Shown one piece after another: positions 21,824-61,820 of a stretch of DNA of 64,000 nucleotides. Under the pieces are notes generated by a model. The model worked only from the letters and a program-made list of their open reading frames with translations. It searched no databases and was not told where the DNA came from. Every line of letters begins with the position of its first letter. Position 1 is the stretch's first letter. Source of the stretch: Bugula neritina (taxonomy: Eukaryota > Animalia > Bryozoa); the NCBI GenBank assembly GCA_964035545.1, contig OZ037773.1, forward strand, positions 3,129,751 through 3,193,750, in the 5' to 3' direction. Position numbers and translations under genes: made by a program.

Positions 21824-21967
21824 CTATCGTATAAACTTCCTAATTTAAGAGACCGTTGCATAAGGAATTGTAAATTTGTAGGATACTCTGGTTACAAATT
21901 CTTTGGAGGTGCCTATAAATGTAGAGGAGAAAACAGATCTCCATTTACTGGTTATCATGTGCTGTAA
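21824..21967 (+). pseudogene. 4-Cys defensin-like exon, copy 3, with Cys->Tyr in the CxC motif
   Basis: LSYKLPNLRDRCIRNCKFVGYSGYKFFGGAYKCRGENRSPFTGYHVL*; TGT->TAT. Confidence 0.5.
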
Positions 21968-26447: not shown

Positions 26448-26512
<65 letters not shown>

Positions 26513-26515
<3 letters not shown>

Positions 26516-26781
26516 AATCTGTGGACAGCAGCTGTTTCGGGATTTGTCCCCTCATCAGCACAGAACAGAGTACCATGGCCCACACCTTCGCAATAGTAAA
26601 ACTTATAGTTTTACTAAAGCATATTTAAAAGGTGTGTAAACTCAAGCCAGAGTGCTCAAGTGACTCTAGGGGTCACCTAGGAGTCACGAGCATTGCAAAA
26701 TGCTAGCAGCTTGAGTTTGTGACCATGGTGAGAGTGCTCAATCATTTAATGTCATTGCTGAGCATTAAATGAGAGCGTAAT
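26513..26781 (-). mobile_element. Monomer of the 272-bp hammerhead retrozyme
   Basis: Same sequence as the 16311 unit with several substitutions; the hammerhead cores are retained; flanked by (TA)n. Confidence 0.9.
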
Positions 26782-28133
26782 ATATATATATATACATATA
26801 TATATTATGCTGGGGACCAGAGCATCAGTAGTTTTCAAATTGCTTTATTTCAAATTTTCTGGATCACTATACAATCAAGTCACAATTTAGTTATCACAGG
26901 CTATATACATATTTTGTAGCGTACGTATATAAATAAGTTATTTAACATATTGTGGTTTTTCACTGAATATAACTTCAGTTTTATGCCTTCAAGGGCCACA
27001 AAATGTAGGCTGGGAACCTCATCTGGCCTTGGGACTGCTTCTTGAACAGCCCTGCATTATACTAATTTTTCATGCATAGGCCTATATGTTGGTATAATTG
27101 TCTTGATTGTGTATTTTTGTTGATCCTGATACACCAACTCAAGCTGCTGTCTTGTTGAGAAGGGTAGTTGTGAGTGTTTATGTAAGTGTAAGTTTGTTTG
27201 CATAAATAGTATAATCATAAATTTATGCTGATATTAGCTCTTATAGCTGCAGTGGTAGATGTATATACTATACTATAGGTCCATTTACAGATGTGCCCGA
27301 CAGCAACAATCATTGTGGAGCCTGTTTTGGCAATAGCAAATTTGAAAATATTAGAATGCACATGCAGAGCTAAATATGGTCAAAACTAAACCATGCCTCT
27401 AAAGTATATTAACATAATTGGAAGTTTTTTATTTGTTGTCGTGAACATCTGCACAAGTAGAAATCAATGTGCATGTATTCTGTTATGGTTTTGTGAGTAG
27501 GACAGTTGAGGAAATTCAATAGAGTGTATACAAAACTACATCTTACATAAACTGCATTTTTAAAGCGTAGCATAATGAGAGTAAGTTTTTGATTAACTAC
27601 TGTAAACATTTGAACAATTTTATCATTAAATATTATTATTAATAACGCCTTTAGTTGATGCTGCCTTGTTTTATAACAACTAAAAACAATATATTTTTGA
27701 CAAATTTGGTTGCCAGTGTTAGACGCAATGTAGTTGAATGCTTTGGGTTCCAAAATGAGTGTTGAATACAAAACCATCACAGTACTGCATGCCTACATTG
27801 TAAGTTCATAAATTTATACTTAATTAGTTATATAATGCTGGTGGATAATAGTATAAAGTACAAAGTAAAATTAATCTAAGTTAATGTATTGAAAAAGTAA
27901 ACCTCTCTTAACAGCATTATGCTTATACTATCTTGGCTTTTCAATTTTGCTGAAATTGATGTATCATAATAGTAATACTAATAAGTGAATCTTCTGAGCT
28001 ATACCTCTGATTTTGACATGGTCAATAAACTAATTTTATATATTTTATATTTGTCTGATGCTATATCATGGTACAATGTATATACACTGTTTTTTCATTT
28101 AAATAGTGCAGCTGTTTGTTTTACAAGGCTTAC

Positions 28134-31100
28134 TTTTTGTTTTTGTAGAAATAACTTCTAAAAAAGTACTCTTATCATCTCCTCTTTCAAATCCTCTACA
28201 GTAAAGCTTCCTTCCAAGTGTTGAATCAGTTATAGTGAATTGAACAGAAAGAGTGAATCCTTCCGGTCTGCCCACTGAGTTACAGTCTGCATTACTGACT
28301 CCAGGTCCTTCTATTCCAGAGACAGCATTATTGTCTGAAAATAATGAATTAGCAACCAACGCATTTTCACTTTCACTACTTGGAATACATCCAGTTCTGT
28401 AGATTTTGCTATCTCCATCAGCTTCATATCGTAACTGTAAGGTTCTCAGATCAGTATAACCAGATGCTTCACATGTGAAAGTTATCTTCTCATCTTTATA
28501 GAACTCTGGTGAAGTTGTAGTACTGTATTCTATCTCTGTAGACGGTTGTGCTATATAAACATAATGCTTCAAGTTACACATGTAATATTTTTAAAATAGA
28601 GACAGTTACTTTCAAAAGTTTACCCGTGACTTCAAACAAAAATGTTAAAGAGGGAATTTCTCCCACACTTCTTCCTTCAAATCCTCTACAGCAGAGCTTC
28701 CATTCGATTGTTGGATCAGTTACACTGGGTTGTACAGAAAGAGTTGATCCTTCCAGTCTACCCATTGAATTACATTCTGCATGACTGACTCTAGGTCCTT
28801 TTATTTCAGAAACAGCATTAATGTCTGGAGGTAATGAAGCAACCCATACCGTTTCATTTTCACCACTTGGAATACATCCAGTTCTGTAGATTTTGCTGTC
28901 TCCATCAGCTTCATATCGTAACTGTAAGGTTATCAGATTAGTATAACCAGACGCTTCACATGTGAAAGCTATCTTCTCATCTTTATAGAAATCTTGTGTA
29001 GTTGTTGTACTGTAGTCTAGCTGTCTCTGTAGAGCATGCTTGTGCTATATGCAGATATGTTATATAATACTTCAAGATACACATATATTACTCTTAAAAT
29101 AGAAACAGTTACTTTTAAGAGTTGACTTTTAACTTCAAACAAAGTTGCTAAAGAGCTTTCTCCCACGGCTCCTCCTTCAAATCCTCTACAGTAGAACTTT
29201 CCTCTGAGTGTTGGATCAGTTATAGTGAGTTGTACAGAAAGAGTGAATCCTTCAGGTTTACCAACTGAGTTACAGTATGCATGACTAACTCCAGACCCTT
29301 CTATTTCAGAGACAGCACTGATGTCTGAAAATAATGAATTAGCAACCAACGCATTTGCACTTTCACTACTTGAAATACATCCAGTTCTGTAGATTTTGCT
29401 GTCTCCATCAGCTTCATACCGTAACTGGAAGGATCTCAGATCAGTACAACCAGATGCTTCACATGTGAAAGTTATCTTCTCATCTTTATAGAACTCTGGT
29501 GAAGTTGTAGTACTGTATTCTATCTCTGTAGAAGGTTGTGCTATATAAACATAATACTTCAAGTTACACATATAATATTTTTAAAATAGAGACAGTTACT
29601 TTCAAAAGTTTACCCGTGACTTCAAACAAAAATGTTAAAGAGGGAATTTCTCCCACACCTCTTCCTTCAAATCCTCTACAGCAGAGCTTCCATTCGATTG
29701 TTGGATCAGTTACACTGGGTTGTACAGAAAGAGTTGATCCTTCCGGTCTACCCACTGAATTACACTCTGCATGACTGACTCCTGGTCCTTTTATTTCAGA
29801 AACAGCATTAATGTCTGGAGATAATGAAGCAACCCATACCTTTTCACTTTCACTACTTGAAATACATCCAGTGCTGTAGACTTTGCTGTCTCCATCAGCT
29901 TCATACCGTAACTGTAAGGTTATCAGATCAGTATAACCAGATGCTTCACATGTGAAAGTTATCTTCTCATCTTTATAGAAATCTGGAGAAGTTGTAGAAC
30001 TGTAGTCTATCTCTGTAGATGGTTGAGCTATATAGACATATTATATAGTACTTCAAGTTACACATATAATACTTTTAAAATAGAAACAGTTACTTTTAAA
30101 AGTTTACCTTTGACTTCAAACAAAAATTGTTAAAGAGAGAATTTCTCGCACACCTCCTCCTTCAAATCCTCTACAGTAGAGCTTCCCTCTGATTGTTGAA
30201 TCAGTTATAGTGAGTTGTACAGAAAGAGTGAACCCTTCCGATCTACCAACTGAGTTACACTCTGCATGACTGACTCCTGGTCTTTCTATTCCAGAGACAA
30301 TGTATTGATGTCTAGAAATAATGGAGCAACTCATACCTTTTCACTTTCACTACTTGGAATACATCTAGATCTGTAGATTTTGCTGTCTCCATCAGCTTCA
30401 TATCGTAACTGGAAAGATCTCAGATCAGTAAAACCAGATGCTTCACATGTGAAAGTTATCTTCTCATCTTTATAGAAACCTGGAGAAGTTGTAGTACTGT
30501 ATTCTATCTCTGTAGACGGTTGTGCTATATAAACACAATACTTCAAGTTACACATATAATATTTTTAAAATAGAGACAGTTACTTTCAAAAGTTTACCCG
30601 TGACTTCAAACAAAAATGTTAAAGAGGGAATTTCTCCCACACTTCTTCCTTCAAATCCTCTACAGCAGAGCTTCCATTCGATTGTTGGATCAGTTACACT
30701 GGGTTGTACAAAAAGAGTTGATCCTTCCAGTCTACCCATTGAATTACATTCTGCATGACTGACTCTAGGTCCTTTTATTTCAGAAACAGCATTAATGTCT
30801 GGAGGTAATGAAGCAACCCATACCTTTTCACTTTCACTACTTGGAATACATCCAGTTCTGTAGATTTTGCTGTCTCTATCAGCTTCAGATTGCAACTGTA
30901 AGGATATTAGATCAGTACAACCAGATGCTTCACATGTGAAAGTTATCTTTTCATCTTTATAAAAATCTGGTGAAGTTGTAGAACTGTAGTCTATCTCTGT
31001 AGACGGTTGTGCTATATAAACATATTATATAATACTTCAAGTTACACATATAATATTTTTAAAATAGAGACAGTTACTTTTAAAAGTTTACCCATGACTT

Positions 31101-32005
31101 TAAACAAAAATGTTAAAGAGGGAATTTCTCCCACACCTCTTCCTTCAAATCTTCTACAGCAGAGCTTCCATTTAATTGTTGGATCAGTTACAGTGAGTTG
31201 TACAGAAAGAGTGAATCCTTCCGGTCTACCCACTGAATTACACTCTGCATGACTGACTCCTGGTCCTTTTATTTCAGAAACAGCATTAATGTCTGGAGAT
31301 AATGAAGCAACCCATACCCTTTCATTTTCACCACTTGCATGGAATACATCCAGTGCTGTAGATTGTACTGTCTCCATCAGCTTCATATCGTAACTGTAAG
31401 GTTATCAGATTAGTATAACCAGATGCTTCACGTGTGAAAGTTATCTTTTCATCTTTATAAAAATCTGGAGAAGTTGGAAAGTACTGTAGTCTATCTCTGT
31501 AGATGGTTGAGCTATATAGACATATTATATAGTACTTCAAGCTACACATATAATACTTTTAAAATAGAAACAGTTACTTTTAAAAGTTTACAATTGACTT
31601 CAAACAAAAATTGTTAAAGAGAGAATTTTTCCCACACCTGCTCCTTCAAATCCTCTACAGTAGAGCTTCCATCTGATTGTTGGATCAGTTACAGTGAGTT
31701 GTACAGAAAGAGTGAATCCTTCCGATCTGCCAACTGAGTTACAGTATGCATGACTGACTCCTGGTCCTTCTATTCCGGAAACAGCATTGATGTCTGGAAA
31801 TAATGAAGCAACCCATACCTTTCATTTTCACTACTTGGAATACATCCAGCTCTGTAGATTGTACTGTCTCCATCAGCTTCATAATGTAACTGTAAGGTTT
31901 TCAGATCAGTATAACCAGATGCTTCACATGTGAAAGTTATCTTCTCATCTTTATAGAAATCTGGTGAAGTTATAGCCCTGTAGTCTATCTCTGTAGATGG
32001 TTGTG
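28134..32005 (-). other. Tandem array of eight V-like Ig exons separated by 73-82 nt introns
   Basis: Exons 5'->3': 31592-32005 (frameshift), 31092-31511 (frameshifts, Cys->Arg), 30598-31011 (open), 30108-30524 (stop), 29614-30027 (open), 29127-29540 (open), 28624-29044 (+7 nt frameshift), 28134-28550 (open). All begin AG|xAQPSTEI and end at a GT. Confidence 0.9.
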
Positions 32006-32259
32006 CTGCGTGGAGATATATCAATGTAATACTTTAATTGTTACACAATACCTCTAATGCTGTGTACCAATATAAACAGTCAAAATAGTTCACCTACATG
32101 TAAAAAAATTATGTGAAAACGATAATATGATGTGTGCAAATTGTATGTGCCAAATGTTAATAATTCTATAGACCTTAAATTAATGTATATCATCACTAGA
32201 TTGTAAGACATGGTGATGAACGGTAAATGATATGGACCAGTTAAAGAACAAATTTTATT

Positions 32260-32806: not shown

Positions 32807-35800
32807 TTGCTGTTGTCATGCCTGGAGATGTGTATATCGTGGGATATATTAATTTCTTAATAAATAAAACAGAAGTTTCAAATTCTTCTTTAATTTAAGG
32901 TTTTTTATCATGCATTTCTATATTATAGAAAACATGATGTATAGAATACAATATGGTTACATATAAGACATTATGGCCATAATATATATAGAGAAAGCAG
33001 AATGATCATATATATGTTATAAAAGGCAATCTGACCATATATGTATATAGAAGATGCAATATATGATTGTATTTATATATAATACACTAATAGTTTCATT
33101 TATGGGTACAATATGATCATCTTATTATATATAGAGAAATGTTATAATTATCCAATATAAAATACAACAATGGTAAAGTATATTAAAAGGTATATTTTAA
33201 TATATTAAAATGTTTTTTATGTTATATTAAAAATATATATTATATTTTATATAATATATATTTTTAATATATATTATATAATATAATTTTATTATTAAAA
33301 ATATATATTATTATATAATATATATTTTTAATATATATTATATAATAATAATAATTTTAATATATATATATAAAATATATACATATATTAAAAATATTAT
33401 GTTATATTAAAATTAAATATTTATATATTTACATAGGTAAAGTATATTAAACCGATTACCCTAGGTAATGTAGATACTATAATTCACCAGTGAATTAAAA
33501 ATCTAACAGCTTGTATGAAGATTTCTTATGGGAATTCTGAGAGAACATAACTTCTACATCTTGACTTTAGAACTCCCAGTCTATACACTCTTGTATAATG
33601 CAGCACATGTATTACCAGTATATATAGTAAAGAAGAAAGCAATTATAACAGATTCTCTTGATAATTATGAGACACTCTAAGCATATAAAATAACTTTTAA
33701 AACAGTGGTATGTTATATGTATAATTATATATTATATTTTAATATCAATGATAATATCTGTATTTGTTATGCATATTGATATAATATTAGAGTGCATTTA
33801 TAGCTTGTGGGTTTTTTATTATAGCATATGACTATATTACATTGTTTTAAAAATGAGAACTGCAATAGTTATAAATTCTCTGATTTCTGTATACAATTAT
33901 ACAAGCTTCAACAGATATAAAAACCTGTATAATTTATATGCACAGTGTTGTCTGTATAAGTATTGTATCATTCACTCCACTACAATAACAATACTAAAGT
34001 TCTAATATTCAATGCATGCAGTAGCTTGTTTTGTTTGTGGATAGTTGTTTATTCATATGAATTTATTTTCTAGTTTATTTATACAAGAATAACCAAAAAA
34101 ATGTGACGCTATATAATATATTGTATTCATTATGTGCATACATGTATAAAAATAAGTTATATTTTGTGTAGCTAACTTGAATATTTCATAAGTGCTTAAT
34201 ATATAGGCAAAATGTTAGTAGTATAGCTGTATATACTTAAGGTATAGGTATGCATGTATAAGTTTCAATTATTGACAATATGCATACTAATCAGCAATTA
34301 TTAATAATATTGATAGGAATAACAAGACTTTCTGATCGACTACTTAGTCACAAGTCATTCCTATTGCTCTCTCCAGACTATGGCTTCATGTTTACATAGA
34401 AGTTGATGTGATTGGTATCTCATAACCATCCTGATCTTCTGACTGGGAGACTCTAATCTGATTCATACTATGTTTTTGGGAGTTGTCAATACACTCATAG
34501 CTATGGTCTTCAGTTCCAGTGACTGACAACTCCTCATATGTAGAAGGAACTGTGGTAGTTGGAGTCTGTGGCATTTTTCCTTAAAATAAGTTTATTTATA
34601 TTTTGAACATTAATAGAATAAGAAGTGACTTAACTTCGGTGTCACTATAGTAGAAACTATTAAGCAGTGGTTCTATGTTAAAGCTAGGTAAAGGAACACT
34701 GTTATAGTATAAAATCACCAAAAGAAGTCTAAGAGCAATGCTTTGTTAAGTATATAAAATTTGGCTCCTGATTAGCCAAGAAAACACTAAAATATTATAA
34801 ATTAGTTATAAACTTGTGAGTAATATGATTGAGCATGTTTCTACAGTATTACATAATTCATGCAATAAAGTCGCTATGAGTTAGCAGTTTATTCAAATTA
34901 TGTAATCTAAATTAATTGTATTACAAAATTCTAATACAGGCTGCTGTTATGAATAGATGCTGCTAATCAAAGACTGTCTAAGGTTGTTTACTGACTTTAT
35001 TATAGTCCACAAAAATACGCATTTATGAAGTGTATATGTAACATAATGTTCACCTTTTGACTTTCTTTTGTTATAGATGGCAACTACGACTACAGTTATT
35101 AACACTCCACTCAGAGTACCAACGAACCCTCCTATCAAGGCTCCATTATTAACTGGCTTCCTTGTAGATGTAGTGGTAGAAGTTGTAGTAGGCAGCAATG
35201 AGGATATGTTGGCAGCATTATCCCATGCTATATTCCACTTTATGGTAACTGAATTTGCTGAAACACATTAAAAATTCAAGTACTTTTTCCGAGAATATTC
35301 TTTTGATAAAACACTCGTACAATTATAATTGTTTAGCATTATAATTAGCTAGTATTGCTTTATAATTATTTCAAAATAATTATAAGACAATACTAGCTGT
35401 GATCCAATTATAAAAACGTAGGAAAATTATTACAATTGAGGCAATGACTATAAAGCACATGATAAATATTTTAAATTTAATTACATACATAAACCATTTT
35501 CAGGCGTACATTCAACTGTTTCTGTTACACCATTTGTTTGAGAGCTCAAAGCTAGCTCATTAGATAGTTCTATCATTAGTACTCCATTGTATTTCCAAAA
35601 AAAGGCAGAAGGTGTTGGGTTAGCATCCACATATTGGCTACAATCTAATTTAACATCATGTTGTAGAGGGTTAAACTTTTTCACAATTGGATTTTGAACA
35701 CCAGGTTTTCTAGTCAAGTCTACAAAACGTAAGCATATCAGTTTTGACGTTATTAAATATACCAGGGGTTTTACATTTAAAATATGAACGTGAGTTTGCG

Positions 35801-36083
35801 TATAAATGTACGGAAAGTGAAGGGCTAATGATACTCACATGGTGATTTGATGGTAGCAGTTTGTTCAGTGTTTTCTCCCTTCCAGTTAGAATGTTCTGTA
35901 TCTGTAGAAGATAATGTTAGTCCAGCTCTATAAACTTAACATTATTACAACACAATGTAAGTTTAACCTTACAATATTTTTTGCAATATGGCAACATTGT
36001 TAAGCAATGTTCTACTGTTTATACGTATTTTTAAATAACTGGATGCATATATCACAGTAACACAGAGACAGAATGTTTTATAT

Positions 36084-38151
36084 GGCCTCGACCGAGGAGC
36101 AGGCTCTTGAGGGCGTCACCCAACATTCTGTTGTTCCGCTCGGCGACTCCGTTCCCTTGCGGGTGATATGGGGTGGTCCGACTCTGGTTCACCTCCCATA
36201 TCCGGCAGAGGTCTCCCATGAGCTGGGACTGGAACTGGGCACCCTGGTCTGTATGTATCTATTCAGGTGACCCGAGGTAGCAGAATACATTTTGCTCCAG
36301 GGCCTGGGCCACCGTGCGGGCCGATGCGTCTGGAATAGCCAGAGCATCTGCCTACCGGGTGAAGTAGTCCGTGAGCACCAGTATCCAGGTGTTCCCTCTG
36401 GCATAGGCATAGGCCCAACGAGGTCTACCGCCACTACTTGCCACAGTCGACCAGCGTATAGCCAGCGTCGACCATTGGTTTCCGTGGGGCGGCGATGCTT
36501 ACTAGCTTGGCAGATCTCGCACTGCCGTACCCGCAGTCGTACATCCCGAGTCATTCCGGGCCAATACCAACGCAGCCGCATGCACCTGATGACCCGACTG
36601 GCTTCAGCATGAGCCTGTTTATGGGTGTCCCAAATCAGTTCCCGTCGGAGGGCGCGTGGACAGATGACGCGGTCCCTCTCCTGCTGACGGTTGTCTGCGG
36701 CTAACGTCATCATCGGAAGACCATCTAGACTGACCTTGAGGGAATCTCAGCAACAACAGAAAAGTTGGACCTCCCTGCCGCTGCTGTTCCTCGCTAGGTT
36801 GTCAGCCCTCCTTCTTGGCCCGGAATATGTCCGCTACTGCCCCTGGTAGCGTCTCCTGGAGTCGGCACAGATCCTTGACATTCTGGTACAGAGTGGGGTT
36901 AGCACGAAGTGCCTGGATGTCCTCAGAGTGGGTTTCGGTCCGAAGATGGCCGTGCTCCCACTGATAGACGGCGCCCTCCCCTAACTCCGTTTCCACGTCA
37001 AGGCGAGCGGGTCCCCTGTCCGGTCTCTATATGCAGGCATTGCTTGCAGTCCTCTACCGGCCGACGATTCATGCCGTCGGCGTTCCCGTGCTTCCAGCCA
37101 GCACGGTGCTCTATCCGGTAAGAGAACGCGGCAAATATCTCCAGCCAACGAGCTACCTGGCTTGAGGGCTCCGCACGTTTACACAGCCATATCAGTGACG
37201 CATGGTCTGTTCGCAATCGGAACGTTCTCCCATACAGATATGGTCGAAAGTGCTTGACCGCCTTGACTACTGCTAGGAGCTCCTTCCTAGTGGTGCAATA
37301 GTTCTTCTCGGCAGCCGCGAGAGTCTTGCTATAGTAAGCTACAACCACCTCACTTCCACCCTGGACTTGGGACAGAACAGCTCCCACATTGTGGTCACTG
37401 GCGTCTGTGTCCAGGATGTACTCCTTGGCTGGGTCAGGATACGCCAGAATTGGCGCCTCCATTAGCCGTTGCTTGAGGTGGTCAAACGCCTGCTGCTCCT
37501 CCTGTGCCCACTGCTACCGGACCCCCTTGGCAGTCAGCCGATTTAACGGCTGAGCCATCCCTGCAAAGCCAGGTTTGTACTGCCGGTAGTGCCCTACTAG
37601 GCCCAGGAATGCACGCAACTCAGGGAGATCGCGGGGGACAGCCCACTTCTTCACAGCCTGTACTTTCTCTGAGTCAGTAGCGACCCTATCACGGCCAACA
37701 ACGTGGCCCAGGTACGTAACCTTCGGCTGTAAGAGTGCACACTTGAAAGGCTTCAGCTTCAGTCCAGCTGCCCGAAGACGGTCAAAGACCTCCCGCAGAC
37801 GACTGACATGAGTCGCAAAGTTGGGAGATTACAATGACGTCGTCCAGATAGATCAGAAGGGTCTTCCAGTGTAAACCACTGAAGACCTGCTCCATGAGTT
37901 GTTGGAAAGTTGCCGGGGCAGACGTAAGCTCGAATGGCAGTACTTTTCACTTTCAGAGCCCATCACGAGTAATGAATGCTGCTTTGTCCTGAGCATCAGG
38001 GCTGAGGGGCACTTGTCAGTATCCGCTAAGTAGATCCAAAGTACTAAAGTACTTGCTACCCGCGAGGGCATCCAGAGACTTATCTATCCGTGGGAGAGGG
38101 TAGGCGTCCTGGATGGTAACGCTGTTGAGTTTGCGTTAGTCCAACACAGAA
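36084..38151 (-). mobile_element. pol: Degenerate Ty3/Gypsy pol fragment (RT, RNase H, integrase)
   Basis: DAYPLPRID, IYLDDVI, YLGHVVG, APILAYPD..ILDTDASD..GAVLSQ..YCTTRKELLAVV..LRTDH, H..AH..WYWPGM..CEICQ and TTPYHPQGNGVAERNNR; many frameshifts; GC-rich; no LTR seen. Confidence 0.92.
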
Positions 38152-38467: not shown

Positions 38468-38863
<396 letters not shown>

Positions 38864-40259
38864 ACAATACCAATATAATTATGCTGTTGAAGGTAAATTA
38901 TTTCGTGATTTTAAAATATTTGCATTGTGTTATCAGATTCAATAAAAAAAACTATTGCAAACGCTAGTTGGTAAATATTGATAACCTTCTACACATCCTA
39001 CAAAAAGAGTTTTAAATCTAGAGCCGGAAAATTATGAAACAATATATTATATAATAAGGCAATCAGCATATAAATTGCTACCTATAGCAATGAGCACTGA
39101 TTTGCTATAATACTGCTTGCCAATATATACAACCATTATAATGTATACAAATTATAATTATATTAAATTGTAATAATATAGATCGAGTATAGAACAATTG
39201 TTACCTGCAGCGTAGATAGATAAGCAGACCAAACAATACAGGAAGTGGTAGTAGCACATCATCTCACTATAACATAGTACACATAGTAATTACAATTTTA
39301 CAATAATTTCATAGTTTATGATATTTTTTCATTTTATTTAAATATTTTAAGTTAGTTTTGAATATCATTCCCTTCATTTAGTTTTTTAACTGCTGATTGC
39401 TAACATCATAATTCAAGTATATAACTTAACTCTATATTCTATCAATAAATTATATTCACAATACAAATAACGGTTGCAGCAAAAAAGTTCCCAGTGTAAT
39501 TTACTATTCTAACTACTCTAACTTAAGAGTCATATGTATATTTGTCAATTCTGAAGTTTTCAAAAACACTAATTTCTATAAATAGATTTTTCTCTAGCAG
39601 TGAATTTGCGGTAAATATACAAAACTAATTGTACGTGAATGCAGGGAGGATATAACTTCTATTACCTTCAGTTTATTTCTGCATACATATATTATCAGTA
39701 TGTGACAAGTATTTATTAATTGCCATTGTTAAATTGAAGTGTGTCAACTAAACTACTTCCAACTATAGAACTGATGCTGTTATAAGCACATATATGGTTT
39801 TATAACAATAATTAGCAACAAGTTCAATATAAGATCGCTCATAGAGACTTTACTTATAGGTAACATTGTAGTATGTTGAATAAATTGAATTTTTTTTAAT
39901 CCAAAAGACGATTCTATATTTCTTTGTATCCTAATGTTGAAACGAAATAGTACAGTATATTCAATAAAGAAATCTCAGGAAGCGATATTATATTAGGGTA
40001 TAGGGGCACACGGGTGTATTTTAGCAAACGAAAATATGCACCACAAGTAAAAAAAGTTTTTACTGTACATAATTATGCCCATGTCAGATTACAGTCAAAA
40101 CCCAACTGTGAACGCGTTTTTGAGACTGAGCGTTGCACTCTGTGACGTCACAACTGTCTGATTTCTGAACGCCACTGTCAATTTTTTATGATGCATTCAG
40201 CATTTGATATGTCAAATGCTTAATTTTTGCGCTTAGTGATCATTCATTTACTGACTTGA

Positions 40260-43200
40260 TTAGGAGGATTAACTGGGGCGCGCGCGCCCATCGTTCATAG
40301 CTTCTAACCGGTTTACTTTCCTCCGCAGTGAGAATAAACCCTTCGTACACTGCTGCAATCGCCTGTGTAGCCGATGGACTTTATCCTCATGAGTGCAGGA
40401 TTGGGAAAAAATGTTGCAGGGAGGGAGGTAAAATTGGTTGGGCGAGGAATGGTATGTGGAGTTTAGGGGAAAGTGCTGATGAGTCGGGAAGTAGTGTTGG
40501 AGGATCGTGAGGTAGGGTTAGTGCTAGAGGGTTGGGAGTTAATGGTTGACGTTCAGGAGATAGTACTGGAAAGTCGAGAGGGTCGGGGTCTTTTCCGTAT
40601 TAGGGAAACTTGAGTGGGGTCCAGCACAGGGTTGTTGTTTACTCTGACCAGCACAACCTAAAGAGGTTGGGTGGCTACTGGCTGGCTGGCTGTCGTGAAT
40701 TCCTTGACATCTGTGTCCTCTCTCACTAGGGACACGTCAAAAACCCCTGGATGAGAGCTGCTCGCTTGCGGGGTCCCCGAGGTGGGGCATGATGAGGTCG
40801 CGGAACTCCGGGAATGTGGTTTCATCAACCACAAATGTCCTACCCACTTGGCAATGAGCTATGCGCTGGTGGCGCAGCACATAGTCCCGCTGGTAGGAGT
40901 ACTCCCCACACTGGCAAAAGACATTGGCATAGTGTTAGGGGCAAGAACCCTCAGTCGCCGAACAATGGAAAAAAAATTTTCTGCATTGGCGACACTTGAG
41001 ATTGCCCGTTTCACCACGCGCTCTGCCAATTCAGAGCCAGGCTTCTTTTGTGATTCAGTGTTGATAGGTGGCCACCATTTTAGGCAGCCTCCATCCATGG
41101 ACGTTTTTGCCAATCTGTACCGCTCCGCCGTCCAAGATAACCTGCTCTTTCTTCGCAGGTAGTTGTACTTCTTTGGGTTTTGAAATAGGCTCCACTAGAG
41201 TGACAGGATGTTGCTCATCAAGTTTGGGGGAATCCTACAGGCCGGTGGCAGCTGAACCAGGGTTTCTAGTGAAAAAGGGGCCGAGCTGACTCGCCCCGGT
41301 TTCAGTAAAGTCTGTCAGATTATCTGGAACAGTAAAGACAGGCTGTGACTGTCCGATTGTACTACTGCCGAAATTTGGCATTTGCCTATACAGTGCTCTA
41401 ACAGCCAGAATTTCAGGTAAATTTAAGATTGCTGCCAACCCCATGTCCTGATTCGACAAGTTGTCCAAGGAAGATTCGTCTCCTAATTTCATGTGGAATT
41501 CTATAAGTAGGGTGGTTTCAACCCAATTGATTAAAGAAGATTGATTAAAAGTTGGGCTAAACTCCGAGAATGGAGAGTCAAGTCTTAAAAAAATACCTGA
41601 CTGATCGTGGTTGTCCGACGTTTCTGGTAAAGTTATTCCCATTTTATATTGTTGAGGAGTTGAAATTGTGCGTCTCTTTGCGACTGAAGTAAGAGTTAAA
41701 ATGATTAAACCTTGTGGCGTCAGATTTTCATATGACAACCCTTCGGTCACATGCTCGGTCAGTTTCTCTGACGATCTTCAGTAGGGTAACTTTACATGTT
41801 GGACCTCTTCCAATTTTTGGCCCGCGTTTTCAACTCTCTCAAGAGAACCTTTCCATCTTATGAGGCGTTTGTCCACGTGAAGGTCAAAGTATATACCTGT
41901 ACCAAGTGCACAACTCTTTGGTAGGGGTGTTCCCATGTACCCCACGTAGTAATCAGCCAGATATCCTGAGAATTTCCTGCTTTTTTGCTGTCTCTCCAAG
42001 TTGATAGACACTGGTGCATCAGCTTTTCTGGTGGTTTTGGCAAAGGGAGGTGTTTCACCATTGTTCTCTCCAGTCGTGGAGACATCTTCTACCTCTGGGG
42101 CCGCTGAGATTGGCCCTGGGGCTAGCTGACCTAAGGATCTAGAAGAAAGAGGAGGGTCAGGTGTTTTGTCAGGTGTACTGTCAGGCTCATCAGGATCACA
42201 AACAATTATTTCCCACTCTCTAGGTCAGGCTACCCATCCTCTGGACATGGGCCAACAGGTTGGCTCCAGGAGCGGGGATGCTTGGCCTGTAGCCTCCGGG
42301 CTACTATAGTATAGTTTTAACCGTTGCTCGTTCTGAACCAAAATTTTTGTCTTGAGTGTTTCATGCAATATGTGTGGTTGGGTAAGACCTCCACTAGACA
42401 GGAGGGCCCCATGAACTTGGGCTGCAGTTTAGCCAACTGTCTGCAACGCCTACGGTAGCTAACCATTCATACCCAGTATCCTACATGTATAAGGGGAGTT
42501 CTTCTGAGTCCTCCGTTCTCACTCTCCACTGTTTTTTTCAGAGAGCATTGTAAACCTCCTCCATAGTATTTATCAACTTCCCTACATACTCGTGTACTGG
42601 GGACTTGGGTGCTAGAACGTAGTAGTTTAGGTGTTCTGGAACCCGGGTCTCTCGATCAAGCATCAAGAGGTTTGAGGTCTCCTGTGTGCTAGAGTGTAAT
42701 GTGCTACAGTAGGCCCCCATGATTTGAGACAACACCACATCCTTTTCCTCTTGACTCCGGCCTAAGATCAGGCTTCTGAGGGCGTCACCTAACATACGAT
42801 TGTTCCTTTCCACAACTCCGTTCTCTTGCGTGTGGTATGGGGTAGTCTGATTATGGTTCACCCCCGTATCTGGCAAAGGTCTTCCATTAGTTAAGACTAG
42901 AACTAGGCACCCTGGTCAAAGTGGGTCTGTTCGAGTAGTCCAAAGCAGCAGAACACACTCTGATCCAAAGCTCGAGCCACTGTAGGAGCTGATGCATATG
43001 TGATATCCAAGGCAACTGCCCAACGAGTGAAGTGGTCCGTGGGCACCAGTATCCAGTTGTTCCTTTGGCGAATAACAGCATTGGTCTGACTAGGTCAAAT
43101 ACTACTACCTGCCACGGTCGACCAGCGTACAGCTAACGCCGACCGGTGGTTTACTTAGGGCGGCCATGCTTGCTAGCCTGACAGACCTCGCACTGCCGCA

Positions 43201-44320
43201 TCCGCAGTTGCACATCTCGAGTCAATCCGGGCCGGTACCAATAAAGCTGTAGACACCTGATGACCCGAATGGCTCCAGAATAGGCCTGTTTATGGGTGTC
43301 TGACATCAACTCCTATCAGAGAGTGTGTGGACATACGACGTGTTCCTTTTTCTGGTGACGGTTGCCTGCTGCCAATGGTATAGTAAGAAGGCCATCTGAG
43401 TTAACCTTGAGAGAATCTCAGCTGCGACAGAAATGTCGGAACTCGACATTACACTGCTGCTTCTGCTTTCCAGTAAGTCGGTGACCCTTCTTCTTAAACC
43501 AGAATATGTCAGCTACTGCCCCTGATAGTGTCTCCTGGAGCCGGTACAATTTCTTGACGTTTTGGTACAAAGTGGAGTTGGCCCGGAGAGCATTGACGGT
43601 GTCTGATTGGGTTTCGAGTCGAAAATGACCATCCTCCCAACTATTGACGTCACTGCCCCAACTTTTCCTTTACGTCCAGGTGAGCGAGTCTCCCCCTCTC
43701 GTCTCTCAATGTGCCAGCGCTGCTTACAGTCCTCCCCGGGCCGGCAGCTCATGTCATCAGCATTCCCATGCTTTTTCCCAGCACAGTGTTCTATTCGGTA
43801 AAAAACTCAACAAGGATCTCCAGCCAGTGAGCTACCTAACTGGAAGGCTTAGCACGTTTGCACAGCTATATCATTGATGTATGGTCAGTTCTCAACCTGT
43901 ATGCTCTTCTATACAGATATGGCCGGAAGTGCTTGATTGCTTTGACTACTGCTAGGAGCTCTTTTCTGATGGTGCAGTAGCTTTTCTCAGCACTCGACAG
44001 AGTCTTGCTGTAGTAAGCCATTACCACCTCTGTTCCACTCTGGACCTGGTGCAGGACAGCCCCCACACTGTGGTCACTAGTGTCAGTGTCCAAGATGTAC
44101 TTTTCAGATGTGTCAAAATACGCCAAGATAGGCACCTCCATTAGCCAATTCTTGAGGTGGTCGAAGGCCTGCTGCTCCTCCTGTGTCCACTGCCATCAAA
44201 CTCCCTTGGCGGTTAGCCAATTCAAAGGCTGAGCCACTCCTGCAAGCCCTTGTATATACTGCCTATAGTACCCTACCAGGCTCAGGAATGCCGGCAAATC
44301 AAAGAGGTCTGGGGGGGGAC
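40260..44320 (-). mobile_element. pol: Second degenerate Ty3/Gypsy fragment (RNase H, integrase, extended 3' region)
   Basis: VPILAYFD..ILDTDTSD..RKELLAVVKAIKHFRPYL, TTPYHTQENGVVERNNRMLGDAL and the pol-end motif RKFSGYLADYYV. It is related to, but diverged from, 36084-38151, and lies in a ~4.6-kb insert (~39995-44590) absent from the paralogous upstream regions. Confidence 0.85.
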
Positions 44321-48133: not shown

Positions 48134-51100
48134 CTATGGCTTCATGTTGACATAAATTGATGTGATTGGTATCTCATAACCATCCTGATCTTCTGAATGG
48201 GAGACTCTAATCTGATTCATGCCATATCTTTGGGAGTTGTCAATACACTCATAGTTATGGTCTGCAGTTCTAGTGACTGACAACTCCTCATATGTAGAGG
48301 GAACTATGGTAGTTGGAGTCTGTGGTGTTTTTCCTTAACAGAAGATTATTAATATATGATGAATATTATAGTTAGTTAGTTGATCATATATATATCACTA
48401 TTAGGAACTAAGTAGAAGCTAAGTAGAAATGGTTGATTGAGTATATAATGTCTCCTAATTGCCAATGAAACACTAAACTAAAATTCAAAAACTTGTGGGT
48501 CTTAGTTCAATTATTGTAAGATAGTTTTATAATAAGCTACTGTATATTAGCATATTTAAACAGTATGACATATATATGCACAAAAGTGTCCATCAGTTTG
48601 AAATATATTGAAGTATTGAATTTAAATTAAGTTTATTGCAAAATTAGAATCCAAGCTGTTGTTATGACTGCATACTGCCAATCACAAGCTGCTGAGCTGT
48701 TTGCTGACTTTAATATAGTTTATTAAAGTATGTGTTTTACAAGTGTACGTAGCATATAACATTTACCTTTTGACTTTCGTATGTAGATGGCAACTGCAAC
48801 TGTAATAGTTATCAACACTCCACTCAGAGTACCAATGATCCCCCCTATTAGACCTCCATTATTCAATAGTTTCTTCGTAGATGTAGCTGGCAGCGTTGTG
48901 GATATTGTGGCAGCATCATCCCATGTTATGTTCCACTTTATGGCAACTGTCTTTGCTGAAACACATTAAAAAATTGAATCCTTGTTTAGAGAAATGTACT
49001 CGAGTACAAGCTTTCATGCAAAATAATTATAAATCACTGTTATAGCTGTTATCCAATTGCAAGAATGTAGTAAATTTATTACAACTAAGGCAATAGCTGA
49101 ACACAAATGATAAATATTTTCTATTAAAGCACATACATAAACCATTTTCAGCTGTACATGAAGCTGTTTCTGTCACACCATTCTTTTGAGAACCCAGAGT
49201 CAGCTCATTAGATGTTTCTGTTGACACAACTCCATTATATGTCCAAGTGAAGGTAGAGGGTGGTGGGTTAGCATCCACATGTTGGCTACACTCTAGTTTA
49301 GCATCAGATTGTTCAGGGTTGAACTCTTTCACAATTGGATCTTGAACACCAGGTTTTGTAGCCAAGTCTACAGAACATAAACATATTATCAGTCTTAAGG
49401 TAAAAAGGTATACCAATGAATTTATAATAATATGTGAATATACATTTCCGTATGCATATGCTTATAACACTCACACTGTGGTGTGATGGTAGCAGTTTGT
49501 ACAGTGTTTCCTCCTCTCCACTTAGAATGTTCTGTATCTGCACAGGATAAAGTTAGTTCAGCTCTGTCTGTCTCAGTAGGAGTATATCTGCCAGCCACAG
49601 TGTTACCATTTACTTCTGAATATTAAAATATATTTGCTCGTGTCAAGCAATGATACTGAAGAACAACAAAGTATCTGCTCCTATGTTCACAAACTTATCA
49701 GTATTACAGCATAACCTCATGAGTTTTATGATCTTATAATCACATTCGCAAGATGACAACATTGCTAAGCAATATATGTTCTACCGTATTAATTAAATTA
49801 TTAAAAAAGTTTGTAAGTTCCAAAGAAGTTAAGTCTAAATTTATAAAAACTCAATTTTATCCTTATAATGACATTCACGTTAAGATTACACAATTAGACA
49901 CAAAATTTTGTAACTTCCCAAGGAGTTGAGTCTATATTTATAAAAATAGCGGCTCTAGAAAGTTAACTTTATTTTTAGATTAAATTGACACCCAAAACTA
50001 TGAACCTAAAAATAATTGTTTTTATTTTTTAAAGTAAAAAGACTGAAAACTAATTACACTCATTTAGTATTATTAGAAAATTGTCTTTCTGTCACAGTCA
50101 CACACAAATGTAATTTTATTTTGAAGTACAGCAAATATCTTCTGCTTTTTACAATGCAAAGAAAACTATATAATTTATAGCTTATAACTAGATAGAAAAT
50201 TATGGAACACTTTTTTCAATTTTATTTATAGTTAAACAGTTCTATAATACTCACTGTATTCATAGACTGACACAGGATCTGCTCCTGTAGAGTTACAATC
50301 AAAACTGAACTCTTCTCTTTCTATGATAGTTGCTGGTTTATTGAGTGATATACCAGTCGGAGCCACTGTTGAATAAAAATGTAAGTAATAATTTAAATTT
50401 AATGCATGCCTCCCGGAAATAAACGAGATATACTCCAAAATCATAGTTTGATGGTTAAAACTATAACAAAAGTCAACGCTGTTAATTTTAATTTTAGCCA
50501 TGGAAAAACATAAACTAGTTATGAAAATGTCATATACATGTAAAGCATTTGTATAAAATACTATAAAGCATAGATATAGTTTTGTTTAGGGCCTAATTAT
50601 ATACTCGGAAAATATTTATGATGCATACGAAATAAGCATCAGTGGGGAGCAGCCGTGGTCTAGGGGTTAAAGGGTTTGCCTAGTAAACACGAAGGTCATG
50701 GGTTCGAGCCCTGACAAAGGCCATTGGTGATGTTAGGAAGAGCATCCAGTCATAATTGCTCCTGTGCCTCATTTAAATAAGTCCTTAGCCCGCTTTAACA
50801 AAAACCCTTTCTATCAGGGGTTTCTCACAGGGATAGCGACTATAATAAACTTGCGTGAGTTTTTTTTATATACCAAATAAGCGTCAGTATTGTCATCAAC
50901 CATCACCTATAATACCATATATGGCAACAGTTGAATTCCACAATAGAAGTAAGCTGCGTTCTACAGAGCTCTACTGAAGTTAGCTAAAGTGACATCAGAA
51001 GACAATCAGTCATCATAATATTGAAACGGAATAATTAATTTTAAGAATTTACCTTTGACTTCCATTGAAACTTCTGAGGAGAGATATTCTCCCACACCTC

Positions 51101-56798: not shown

Positions 56799-58035
56799 CT
56801 AGCTTTTGATGTTGACATAAGTTTGTCCAGAGTGTGCCTCATAGTTATCTGTATTATCTGTTTGTCTTTGAGATACATCAAGTGAGTCATAGTTGTGATC
56901 ATCTATTCTAGTGGCACGCATCTCTGTGTATGTGGAGTTATCAGTCTTAGCAGCGGACATATCTGTGTATGGGGAGTTATCAGTCCTAGTGACAGACATA
57001 TCTGTGTATGGGGAGTTATCAGTCCTAGTAGTAGACATCTCTGTGTATGGGGAGTTATCAGTTCTAGTGACAGACATTTCTATGTATGGGGAATTATCAG
57101 TCTTGGTGACAGACAACTCTGTGTACAGGGAGTTATCATTCCTAGTGACAGATAACTCTGTGTATGGGGAGTTGTCAGTCCCAGTTCCAGCCTGTGACCT
57201 AATTCCTTAAAGAAAACAAGACAAGCCAGTTTTATTTTGCAACAACTTTTTGGATTGCGACTTCAAGTGTGATTGTTATATATATAAATATAGTGAAATC
57301 ATTATTTCATTCCACAATTTTATCAACCAATAACACCTTTTAGTTTTCCAAGATGAAATGCTACTCCAGCTGTGATGATAAGTAATAGACAACCACCAGC
57401 TAATCCTCCTCCCAGAGCAGCTTTGTCTATGCTCGCACATGGTGGTCTTTCAGAAAGAGTCGTGATTGGGATTGTGCTTGGTAGAATGATAGAACTATCC
57501 CACTTTATTTTCCATGTAATAATAACCGATTTAGCTGCATAATAAAGAACAATGTTGCTAATAAAGCAGATCTTTCAATAACACTATTAAAAATTTCCGA
57601 TAACAAATAGTCTCTGATCTTCATAATTAATACCATAGTTAAGTTAACTCTCTAATAAACTGAATGACATGATTATTGAAAATAAGGTGCCAAACTTTAA
57701 AGTAAGTGCATGCATTAGTTGTCACCTAGAGTGGTGAAATTTAAATAATTTCTTACATAAACCATTTCCAGCTGCGCATGAAACTGTGTCTGTTAAACCA
57801 TCTGTTTGAGAATTCAGACCCAGCTCATCAGCTGATCCTATGATCAAAGCTTCATTATATGTCCAAGTGAAGGTTGAGAGTGGTGGATTAGCATCTACAT
57901 GTTGACTACACTTTAGTTTAACATCAGATTGACCTGGGTTGTACTCTTTCGTGATTGGATCTTGAACACCTGGTTTTCTAGCCAAATCTGCAGTGCACCA
58001 ATATGAAAATGTTGAAATTAATAAGTATATCAGGC

Positions 58036-58104
<69 letters not shown>

Positions 58105-61100
58105 TGATCTTTAATTTCATTTACTTGTACTAAAAGTGAAGGGTCTATATGACACTCACACTGTGGTGTGATAGTAACATTTCTTTCAGTGTTTCCTCCC
58201 TTCCAGTTAGAATGTTCTCTATCTGTACAGGATAAACTTAGTCTAACTCTGTTTGCCTCAGCAGGAGTATACTTTCCAGCCACTGTGTTCCCATTCACTT
58301 CTGTACATGAATATATATGTTTAAGTCAAACATCAACATTGGTTAGAAGAATATCAAAAAAAAAGTATTTGGTTCTAAGTTTAAAACTTTCTCAACATAA
58401 CGACATAATATGACCCTAATATGTCACTATTATATATAAGCATTTACAAGATGACAACATTGTTCAATAATGCTATATCCTGTATACACCTATTTGTATT
58501 CTCAGCTTTCTGCTACATAAATAAAGAATCTACAATCATGCATTAGTTTTATTCAGTAAGATGGAGTGAGTCGGAAAAAATAAGTATGAATCCTATTTGC
58601 ATATATATAGAACTATACTCACTGTATTCATAGACTGACACAGGATCTGCTCCTGTAGATTTACAATCAAAGGTAAACTCTTCTCCTTCTATGATAGTTT
58701 CTGGTACATTTAGAAATATATCAGTTGGAGCAGCTGTTGAATGAAAATAAGACATGCAAAATATATTTTAAGTTGAGGAGTCAAATAAAGTAAGAGCACT
58801 TGCTAATACTTTAACTTAATGTCTTGGCTTATATGTGATATAGATATGAAAAATGTCAAGTGAGATAGAAGCATTCAAAACATTATACTTTTCTCCTTCT
58901 GTAATAGTTTTTGATTTCCTGAGGTTAATAAGCTGCAACCACAGTTTTAATAGAAACGCATTCATAAACTGAAAATAAACATTCGGTTTACAGAAATATT
59001 TCCAATAAAGTTGTTTTACTCATTAAAGTTCTTAATTTTTAATTAAAATACACAAAAATCTAACTAACATGGCAGCATGCTAAATGCTTAAAAATAAAAC
59101 TTATTTAAACTATTATGGTAGCAATTGGATCCCACAGCATATATAGAGATGAATGACATGTTTTAAAAGCTGAAGTTCATTGAAGTTGCATCTAAAAATT
59201 ATGGTCTGCCAACATAATATTGAAATACAAAGATTCACTTTAAAGAGGTTACCTTTCACTTCCATTGAAACTTTTGAGGAAAGAATTTCTCCCACGCCTC
59301 CTCCTTCGAATCCTCTACAGTAGAACTTCCCTTTGAGTGTTGAATCAGTTATAGTAAGTTGTACAGAAAGAATGAACCTTTCAGGTTTACCAACTGAGTT
59401 ACAGTATGCATCACTGACTCCAGGTCCTTCTATTCCAGAGACAGTAATAATATCTGGAGTTGATGAACCCTCCCACACTGCGTCATACTCAATACTAGCA
59501 GCACATCCACTTCTGTAGATTGTACTGTCTCCATCAGCTTCATAATGTAACCGTAAGGTTATCAGATCAGTATAACCAGATGCTTCACATGTGAAAGTTA
59601 TCTTCTCGTCTTTATAGAAATCTGGTGAGCTTGTAGTACTGTAGTCTATCTCTGTAGATGGCTGTGCTATATATAGATGTATAGTAACAGCCCAGGTTAC
59701 AAAATACATCTAATACTGTGTGCCAATATATATATAGTCAAAAACGTCTGGTTGTAAAAAATTACTTAACGAATAATAACAAAAGTGTATACAAACTGCA
59801 TATACCAAATTTTGAGAATATGAACCAATTGTAAACCAATTGCACTCCATTAAAGGACATGACAGTGAGAATAAAATATTTAACAAGCAGTCTTTACTTA
59901 TTCCTACTTATTCATACTTATTCATATCTTAACTTTTTCATATGAATGTTCATAACACTAACACTGTGGTATAATAGCAGCAGTTCGTTCAGTGTTTCCT
60001 CCCTTCCAGTTAGAATGTTCTGTATCCGAACAGGATAAAGTTAGTCCAGCTCTGTCTGTCTCAGTAGGAGTATACTTACCAGCCACTGTGTTACCATTTA
60101 CTTCTGAATATTAAAACATATCTGTTTTTGCCAAGTTATGATGGTAAAGAACAACAGATGATCTGTTCCTATATGTTTATAAACTTATCAATATTACAAC
60201 ACAACCTCATAATTTTTATTATACTCCTATATATAATCCCATTATAGCAATATGACTTGTAAATTGCTATAAGCAATGCTCTACCAGTTACACAAAATTT
60301 TGAAACTTCTCAAAGAGTTAAGTCTAACTTTGTAAAAATAACAACTCTAAAAACTTAACTCTTTTTTTAGAAGAAGCTGACACCTAAAACTCTAGATTTA
60401 CAAATAACTGTTTTAAATTTATAAAATAAAAAGTATGAAAAATAATTACACTCATGTAGTATTATTAGATAATTGTATTTATATATGTCACAGTCACATA
60501 CAAACGTAATTTATTTCATATTACATGTAGCAAATATTTTATGATTTTTACTATATGCAAAGAAAAGCTATTAATTTATAGTTTACTAGGTAGAAAGTCA
60601 TGGAACACATGTTTGAATTTTAATTAATTAAACACTTCTATATATATACTCACTGTATTCATAGACTGACACAGGATCTGCTCCTGTAGAGTTACAATCA
60701 AAAGTGAATTCTTCTCCTTCTATGATATTTTCTGGTTTATTGAGTGATATACCAGTTGGAGCCACTGTTGAATAAAATCGCAAATATTAATTTAAATTTA
60801 ATGCATGCCTCCCAGAAATTAACGGGATATATAATCCAAAATTTAATTTGAGAGTATAGAACTATATAGCAAAAATCAATGCTGAAATTTTTAATTTCAC
60901 CCATGAAATTACACACATTAATTAGCTATGAAAGTGTCAAATATAGCATTATTATAAAATGCTAAGCAGATAGTTTTGTTTAGGACCTATAATAGTAATA
61001 TACTCGAAAAATATTTATGGTGCATACTGAGTAAATTTTAGTGATGCCATCAACCATCACCTATCATGGCAATAGATGAATAGAAGTTTAATCTGTGTTG

Positions 61101-61820
61101 TATAATATAGAGCTTTACTAAAGTTAGTTACAGTGAAACAAAAAAGACAACCAGTTATGCTATAATAATTTTGAAATAGAATAATTTATTTTTAAGATAT
61201 TACCTTTGACTTCCATTGAAACTTCTGAAGAAAGAATTTCTCCCACACCTCCTTCAAATCCTCTACAGTAGAACTTTCCTTTGAGTGATGAATCAGTTAT
61301 AGTGAGTTGTACAGAAAGAGTGAACCCTTCAGGTTTACCAACTGAGTTACAGTATGCATTACTGACTTCAGGTCCTTCTATTCCAGAGACAGTAATAATA
61401 TCTGGAGATGGTGCACTTTCCCATACTGTGTCATCCTCAGCACTTCTACTACATCCACTTCTGTAGACTGTACTGTCTCTGTCAGCTTCATATCGTAGCT
61501 GTAAGGATCTCAGATTAGTATAACCAGATGCTTCACATGTGAAAATTATCTTCTCATCTTTATAAAAATCTGGTGAAGTTGTAGTACTGTAGTCTATCTC
61601 TGTAGATGGTTGTGCTATAAGAAAAATATATAACATATAAAACTCTAAGATCCCCAATATGTACGTACTTTATGATACTGTGCACCAATATATTTTGCAA
61701 TCCTTAAAGTTCTGTGTATCCAAATTATATATAATATAGTTGAAGCATAAAACAATTGTTACCTGTAGTGTAGATAGATATATAGACCAGACAATACAGG
61801 AAGTGGTAGTAGCACATCAT
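56799..61820 (-). CDS. Ig-superfamily-like type I receptor 'E', 740 aa: SP-V-C2-V-C2-I-TM-tyrosine-repeat tail
   Basis: Exons 61763-61820, 61204-61614, 60654-60764, 59963-60103, 59253-59666, 58623-58733, 58160-58300, 57757-57987, 57337-57534 and 56799-57205 total 2223 nt, are all phase 1 and are open. Confidence 0.85.
56907..57179 (-). repeat. Coding 39-bp minisatellite, 7 copies of TDNSPYT(E/D)(L/M)SVTR
   Basis: Seen directly in the tail exon of receptor E. Confidence 0.93.

Follow-up and report, generated by a model that had tools for sequence, protein, structure and literature searches.

How is a last coding exon to be read when most of it is a single 39-bp unit repeated in frame, with one tyrosine in every copy? 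The question is raised by positions 56799-57205, on the minus strand, of a 64,000-nucleotide stretch of the bryozoan Bugula neritina (C9:3129751-3193750; hereafter the window, whose numbering is used for all positions except those given in Mb). We found that this region forms the final coding exon of gene E, which encodes a type I membrane receptor of the immunoglobulin (Ig) superfamily, and that related genes of the same cluster carry tails with different numbers of the unit. Judged from sequence, the tail would probably, though by no means certainly, serve as a multivalent scaffold for docking at phosphotyrosines, with a valency changed by the gain or loss of repeats, and signal strength may evolve by the same gains and losses.

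The tail exon of gene E and its repeat

The minus-strand frame read from 57203 met no stop until the TAG at 56801-56799 and gave a tail of 135 residues, the first of which is a Gly whose codon is split across the preceding intron (phase-1 acceptor ...tctttaag|GA). A short basic, Gly-rich lead-in is followed by seven units of 13 amino acids (aa), in each of which a single tyrosine sits within D-N-S-x-Y-x-[E/D]-[L/M]; the first two carry S-x-Y-x-x-L (SPYTEL, SLYTEL) and the next five Y-x-x-M (in order SPYIEM, SPYTEM, SPYTDM, SPYTDM and STYTEM), after which come a degenerate eighth unit, HNYDSL, about 20 further residues and QTYVNIKS immediately before the stop. A preliminary description of this exon had listed the same motifs at a 13-aa period between 56799 and 57205, and the translation agreed with it exactly, coordinates included. 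At the nucleotide level, TRF placed an in-frame 39-bp tandem array on the minus strand at 56908-57185 (7.1 copies, 82% matches, score 360), a second repeat search returned the same 39-bp family (D9), and the unit table gave the same array. The period falls within the unit size of a variable number tandem repeat (VNTR; ~10-100 bp), a term that goes in its allelic sense beyond the copy-number variation documented here, which is that between paralogues in one assembly. The tail is composed of polar or small residues to 77% and of Tyr to 7%, with ten tyrosines in all and no folded domain; a sub-threshold match to the Pfam profile GluR_Homer-bdg was driven by composition and was dismissed.

The repeat can be read without a stop in three of the six frames, two of them antisense, so openness alone cannot fix the coding frame. 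The minus frame is set by the splice phase, by a conserved non-repeat C-terminus (this extension of the tail frame is conserved in all paralogues), by nucleotide diversity at the codon positions and by a ratio of nonsynonymous to synonymous substitution rates (dN/dS) below 1. The antisense open frames on the plus strand (window 56895-57210; 86 and 99 aa) are most likely a by-product of a repeat unit that contains no stop.

Gene structure, splicing and ectodomain fold

Gene E comprises ten exons on the minus strand, all open and together 2223 nt long (741 codons, hence divisible by three), with nine introns that are all GT-AG and all phase 1. They encode a leader, two modules each made of a V-set domain and a split Ig-like domain, a further Ig-like domain, a transmembrane helix and the tail of about 135 aa. 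The leader exon (61763-61820) consists of an ATG at 61820 and 19 codons up to a phase-1 donor, has conserved counterparts upstream of genes D and C and belongs to repeat family D19. The duplicated upstream module, assigned by sequence reading, is formed by the exons V' (61204-61614, 83% identical to V), Ia' (60654-60764) and Ib' (59963-60103). Downstream of it lie the V exon with its V-set domain (59253-59666, 414 nt), the two halves of the split Ig-like domain in exons Ia (58623-58733, 111 nt) and Ib (58160-58300, 141 nt), both likewise read from sequence, the membrane-proximal Ig-like exon I2 (57757-57987, 231 nt) and the stalk and transmembrane exon (57337-57534, 198 nt), each of these five being phase 1-1.

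The preliminary description depended on the tail exon being spliced to the transmembrane exon, and the splice sites bear this out. The exon at 57337-57534 encodes a Thr/Pro-rich stalk, a 20-residue uncharged hydrophobic segment and a basic HLGKLK, and homologous exons lie upstream of every paralogue tail. It ends in the phase-1 donor ...AAA G|GT, and because this meets the phase-1 acceptor of the tail exon across a 131-nt GT-AG phase-1 intron (57206-57336), the two exons join in phase, with the junction reading ...GKLK-G-IRSQ.... When the tail was searched against 1.84 billion representative proteins, one true relative was returned (the remaining matches were unrelated repetitive proteins), and against 5.8 billion proteins there were two, KAF6038701.1 and EB796_020209, both hypothetical proteins of B. 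neritina made up of a transmembrane exon and a four-unit tail; the two gene models make the same transmembrane-tail junction, independently of each other. The draft contigs of B. neritina match the C9 cluster at 78-88% nucleotide identity, introns included, and with the best identity in that range no 1:1 orthologue of gene E was callable in the draft. Following a transmembrane exon in phase, the tail exon encodes a cytoplasmic tail. The intron at 57206-57336 holds an in-frame TGA four codons from its start, and its retention would therefore shorten the receptor's tail to about 10 residues and leave it without a tyrosine motif.

For the ectodomain, sequence and profile searches of the PDB with the gene E exons gave Ig matches only, none of them significant, and the I2 exon produced weak Ig leads (PDB E = 0.08-0.24 to CD22 and nectin; its atlas matches were also Ig). 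An AlphaFold2 model of the V exon built with eight close paralogues was unusable (predicted local distance difference test, pLDDT, 44.5). With an alignment of 44 V-like exons from the same genome (27-86% identity), the model reached a pLDDT of 93.9 and a predicted template modelling score of 0.89, and Foldseek gave at least 359 PDB matches to it at E <= 1e-3; among the matches listed, all were V domains of antibodies, nanobodies, T-cell receptors (TCR) or CD8. The V family keeps the canonical Cys pair C27/C117 plus a second pair, C55/C89. On the strength of this model, the V exon of gene E has a predicted Ig V-set fold, and with the leader and the phase-1 exon chain to the transmembrane segment it gives gene E the features of a type I membrane protein with an Ig-fold ectodomain.

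A family of tails in one cluster

Searched across the 216-Mb assembly, the tyrosine-repeat tail is confined to one 165-kb cluster at C9 3.08-3.25 Mb. The cluster holds eleven tails, eight of them multi-unit (2-8 canonical units; 8, 7, 7, 5, 4, 4, 3 and 2) and three single-unit, namely those of genes C and D and of a third gene of the same type. The proposal that repeat number differs between paralogues is thus upheld, with a range of 1 to 8 units. The single units that had been noted in C and D were recovered as STYEEL followed by H[NS]YECI: the tail exon of gene D (48134-48334, minus strand, transmembrane exon near 48842) encodes STYEEL, HNYECI, YEIP and YVNM, and that of gene C (34392-34580, minus strand, transmembrane exon near 35138) encodes STYEEL and HSYECI and has lost the C-terminal YxN. 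The unit had also been said to occur three times in gene A, which is approximately right: its tail exon (2278-2655, plus strand, transmembrane exon 1737-1901) has two canonical YxxM units and an HNY unit (HNYDTL), then a second, diverged module (YVEM, DKYDSV) and YANI.

Seven of the eight multi-unit tails and both B. neritina tails share one layout, in which two S-x-Y-x-x-[L/I/V] units precede one to six YxxM units and the run is followed by H-N-Y-x-x-L and a C-terminal Y-x-N. Single changes between L and M, which the preliminary description had regarded as a possible means of tuning individual paralogues or alleles, proved not to be scattered. They depend on position and are conserved, units 1 and 2 ending in L and later units in M in five cluster paralogues and both B. 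neritina tails; three further cluster tails differ. Within the five paralogues, the nearest neighbours of units 1, 2, 3 and the last unit are the units at the same position in other paralogues, so these units are orthologous by position and the edges of the array are old. The interior units are closest to their neighbours in the same gene (38 of 39 nt identical within locus L003, for example), and the array has therefore both expanded and contracted in the middle.

V-like exons far outnumber the tails, with at least 69 found, in further clusters on C9 and on other chromosomes. Those at C9 0.03-1.09 Mb and 4.13-4.20 Mb (loci L040-L044) keep the same order of V, split-Ig, Ig and transmembrane exons, and their V exons are 48-81% identical. 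No tyrosine-repeat tail was recognised within ~3.6 kb of the transmembrane exons at the loci inspected, and these genes could be differently wired partners of the tailed receptors. Weaker matches to the tail on C1, C2, C3, C5 and C9 at 10.6 Mb were considered as kin or as a source minisatellite and rejected as unrelated repeats, mostly of 39-bp period, which the tail matched through the common period alone, a sample biased by the 39-bp periodicity of the query itself. Their best rotation identity to the tail unit was 16-22 of 39 positions, against a 99th percentile of 21 in the null, and six loci (L014, L015, L017, L019, L021 and L022, on C1, C2, C3, C5 and C9) are 39-bp-period minisatellites whose sequences show no relation to that of the tail unit.

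Constraint on the motifs

Across the 40 canonical units, Tyr is retained in 39 (TAC 36, TAT 3) and Asn at -3 in all (AAC 30, AAT 10), with Asp at -4 and Ser at -2 in 38 each, while the linker and the +1/+2 positions are changed in 5-16 units. The residue at +3 is M in 25 units, L in 10, I in three, V in one and R in one. Nucleotide diversity at codon positions 1, 2 and 3 was 0.143, 0.170 and 0.256, respectively, an excess at the third position (permutation P = 0.02). The dN/dS between E and paralogue L002 was 0.31 (dS 0.21), two within-genome pairs of four-unit tails gave 0.59 and 0.48, and four-unit tails compared between the two genomes gave 0.25-0.41 (dS 0.22-0.42). In 12 aligned tails, which are only 33-49% identical, neither the S-x-Y of the last unit nor the H-x-Y varies, and all but one keep the C-terminal Y-x-N. 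No frameshift or stop occurs in the ten repeat arrays read. By these ratios the tail is under purifying selection, and the pattern is consistent with selection on short linear motifs within a disordered tail.

Docking scaffold or something else

Partners were assigned to the motifs by the established vertebrate SH2 consensus. By that consensus S-x-Y-x-x-L fits the ITIM, the tyrosine-based inhibitory motif of immunoreceptors, YxxM is of the p85 type and YxN of the Grb2 type, and the classes proposed for the tail of gene E hold good in textbook terms: S-x-Y-x-x-L twice, YxxM five times and YxN once. SPYTEL and SLYTEL match the ITIM consensus [S/I/V/L]-x-Y-x-x-[I/V/L], and the five YxxM compare with one to six in the multi-unit paralogue tails; a Ser after YxxM, as in the units of gene E, is also seen in IRS-1. 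A PH-domain-adaptor-like protein of the sponge Oscarella pearsei (P0010 in EukProt) has at least six PYTDMSG-type sites with the same core as the bryozoan YxxM units, which is probably a convergent use of the p85-type motif. The likeness to an ITAM, the tyrosine-based activation motif of immunoreceptors, also put forward in the preliminary description, holds in part: the loose form Yxx[IL]x(6-9)Yxx[LI], a consensus applied to Hydractinia Alr proteins (PMC9546547), has one match in gene E (YTEL-x9-YTEL) and is present in most paralogues, whereas the strict spacing of 6-8 residues gave zero matches. The 9-residue spacer is a result of the 13-aa unit period.

Candidate readers of these motifs are encoded in the assembly. 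A collinear SH2-SH2-PTP (SHP-like) gene lies at C3 23.740-23.749 Mb and an SH2-SH2-tyrosine kinase (Syk-like) gene at C7 14.371-14.378 Mb, several SH2-kinase genes are encoded in the genome, a match to the p85 inter-SH2 domain on C1 stands above the Pfam cut-off, and PID/PTB genes occur at four or more loci. Because of the motif classes, the spliced receptor context, the constraint on the motifs, the layout of the array and these candidate readers, we favour the phosphotyrosine scaffold. Under it, ligand engagement would lead Src-type kinases to phosphorylate the tail tyrosines and turn the tail into a multivalent docking platform, on which the fixed membrane-proximal S-x-Y-x-x-L pair would engage a tandem-SH2 protein (the SHP-like phosphatase or, less well fitted, the Syk-like kinase), the variable YxxM run the p85 subunit of PI3K, and the C-terminal YxN a Grb2-type adaptor. 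Unequal exchange or slippage within the array would have given the paralogues their one to eight units, and each change in unit number would alter docking valency, and hence the strength of the output, with the ectodomain left untouched.

Several points weigh against this reading. The tyrosine motifs are short and degenerate, and their partners are assigned by vertebrate SH2 rules; each motif doubles as a YxxPhi sorting signal, the invariant Asn at -3 fits an NxxY motif for PTB domains at least as well, and Pro at -1 is an atypical context for a Src-family substrate. Pfam profiles recognise no ectodomain exon of gene E, and the B. neritina models that support the splice are gene predictions covering only the transmembrane and tail exons. 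A dN/dS of 0.3-0.6 indicates moderate constraint at most, and recent repeat expansion together with gene conversion could mimic conservation between units.

The alternative that survives best, although we hold it to be unlikely, is that the units are sorting or engulfment signals, composites of NxxY, for PTB adaptors of the Dab2/ARH/GULP/Numb type, with YxxPhi, for the mu2 subunit of AP-2. In that case endocytosis or phagocytic uptake would speed up with the number of units, and such a role can coexist with docking of SH2 proteins. The Asn found at -3 in 40 of 40 units and the Asp at -4 in 38 of 40 place the tyrosine in D-N-x-x-Y, the register of an LDL-receptor-type signal, L, M or I stands at +3 of every tyrosine (the single V and single R among the canonical units aside), and the genome has PID/PTB genes at four or more loci. 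NxxY and YxxPhi, with N at -3 and a hydrophobic residue at +3, are thus both present; the motif is nevertheless N-S-P-Y and not the strict N-P-x-Y, with Pro at -1 instead of -2, and sorting signals rarely need seven or eight copies. The position-specific use of L or M and the conservation of YxN at the C-terminus are what SH2 selectivity predicts, and they favour SH2 docking over sorting because AP-2 treats L, M and I alike.

Quite improbable, in our judgement, is the view that the repeat is a functionless coding minisatellite tolerated in a disordered tail, its units alike through recent expansion and homogenisation, with only the ancestral single unit, the HNY and the YxN of any importance. 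Genes C and D work with one unit, the interior units are gene-specific and near-identical, as in L003, 39-bp minisatellites are frequent in the genome, and three of the six frames run through the array without a stop, all of which such a view would accommodate. It does not account for units 1, 2, 3 and the last being orthologous by position over five paralogues, and hence old, for Tyr and Asn codons that have synonymous but almost no replacement changes, for dN/dS below 1 between genomes at a dS of 0.22-0.42, or for the complete lack of frameshifts and stops in the ten arrays read. That gene E or its tail exon is unexpressed, the copy having lately become a pseudogene or the exon being unused in a fast-duplicating cluster, is very improbable indeed, for while the cluster does contain broken V-like exons (one at 31090-31512 has three stops, and other copies also carry stops), gene E has ten open exons with canonical phase-1 splice sites and a length divisible by three, and its tail bears the mark of purifying selection.

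Comparison with known receptors and repeat proteins

By analogy, the closest counterparts of the phosphotyrosine scaffold would be the Hydractinia Alr proteins and the vertebrate multi-ITIM receptors and, where the principle of the repeat is concerned, the EPIYA segments of CagA and the VNTR of DRD4. The Alr proteins likewise come from a gene cluster of a marine invertebrate that lives in colonies, and they are type I receptors with one domain per exon and with V-set-like domains that sequence searches miss and that are nonetheless Ig-folded, and Syk and SHP homologues are present there too. Their tails carry ITAM or ITIM motifs, and the bryozoan tail was judged by the same consensus (PMC9546547). 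They belong to another phylum, and their tails are diverse and not described as an in-frame tandem repeat; open protein searches with the bryozoan tail returned Bugula relatives only, and no direct comparison with Alr sequences was made. The likeness is one of architecture, and a link to allorecognition would be conjectural.

The vertebrate multi-ITIM receptors of the Ig superfamily (KIR2DL, LILRB, CD22, PECAM-1, SIRP-alpha) share with gene E an Ig ectodomain, an uncharged transmembrane helix and a long tail with two or more [S/I/V/L]xYxx[L/V/I] sites, and YTEL is also found in a KIR ITIM. CD22 pairs its ITIMs with a Grb2 site (PMC5302901), as the tail of gene E would. The likeness is by architecture and motif, not by demonstrated descent, and the vertebrate tyrosine motifs are unique sequence, not units of a minisatellite. 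We know of no vertebrate multi-ITIM receptor with a run of five or six YxxM sites. Multiple YxxM sites, often with Ser after them, occur in IRS-1 (YMxMS), CD19, CD28/ICOS and DAP10 (YINM), where they are docking points for the SH2 domains of p85 and their number sets the recruitment of PI3K; the YVNM at the end of gene D is a combined p85/Grb2 site type, as found among the YxxM co-receptors. IRS and Gab proteins differ in being cytosolic adaptors with PH/PTB domains whose sites are not exact tandem repeats.

Tandem coding repeats with one phosphotyrosine motif per unit are also seen in the EPIYA segments of Helicobacter CagA and in Chlamydia Tarp, whose copy number varies between strains and scales SH2 binding (SHP2 for CagA). 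These are effectors that bacteria inject and that imitate substrates of the host, whereas gene E is a receptor of the animal itself, and their unit sequences are unrelated to those described here. The 48-bp VNTR in exon 3 of human DRD4 is likewise an in-frame coding minisatellite in an intracellular receptor segment, variable in copy number and gaining one short linear motif with every unit; it differs in lying in the third loop of a G protein-coupled receptor and in having proline-rich SH3-type motifs, and its variation is allelic and documented, whereas that of the bryozoan tail is seen between paralogues. Draper/CED-1/MEGF10 likewise combine an N-x-x-Y-type PTB site with YxxL/I sites, the latter read by the Syk-family kinase Shark; they have an EGF-repeat ectodomain instead of an Ig one, single-copy motifs, and NPxY instead of NSPY.

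Receptors with tyrosine-motif tails are well known, and what is new is a tail built from a minisatellite, with one docking motif per unit and a copy number that varies between neighbouring genes. In the literature we found no bryozoan precedent, no receptor tail described as minisatellite-built and no described recognition receptors for Bryozoa, a colonial phylum; to our knowledge no animal receptor with such a docking tail has been reported, the main known cases of such repeats being CagA and other bacterial effectors. Should the units prove to be true docking sites, the cluster would be a natural experiment on how motif valency sets signalling output and would show a route by which receptor families are rewired quickly with ligand binding unaltered, and the family would add Bryozoa to the few invertebrates with V-set receptors bearing ITIM/ITAM-like tails. 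A bolder suggestion, which we consider decidedly unlikely, is that the C9 3.08-3.25 Mb cluster is the bryozoan counterpart of the KIR/LILR or Alr complex, with V-set domains for self/non-self or immune recognition and a tail minisatellite that is a true VNTR. Were this so, the count of YxxM sites following a fixed pair of inhibitory type would vary among alleles and not only among paralogues, inhibition and activation would be balanced by a heritable setting that evolves fast, and the differently wired partners would be the V-like genes without this tail in the remaining C9 clusters.

Other features of the window and assembly

The window is AT-rich (26-37% GC over most of its length) and has many microsatellites, and a perfect (AG)197 tract lies at 38468-38860. 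A 487-bp tandem array at 28179-32007, in minus-strand frames, holds about 7.8 copies of a V-like exon, some open and some broken; it lies downstream of tail C, and neither a transmembrane nor a tail exon belonging to it is present close by. A second array, at 16308-17682, is a 272-bp tandem repeat (5.1 copies, 99% identity) flanked by long (AT)n tracts, and a diverged single copy of it occurs about 9 kb away, at 26508-26807. Over 9133-22123 a set of inverted repeats, the longest 612 nt and their arms 88-98% complementary, makes up a large duplication that resembles a palindrome, centred near 15-18 kb. The segments 36000-38000 and 40000-44000 are islands of high GC (0.47-0.56, where the flanking DNA has about 0.29); they have open reading frames on both strands and contain 300-nt repeats 6.7 kb apart (families D17 and D18). 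Elsewhere in the assembly, small contigs such as C33, C105, C176, C66, C10 and C201 gave intronless kinase and phosphatase matches; because these are broken only by TAA or TAG and never by TGA, the contigs may stem from an epibiont or contaminant that uses a ciliate-type code.

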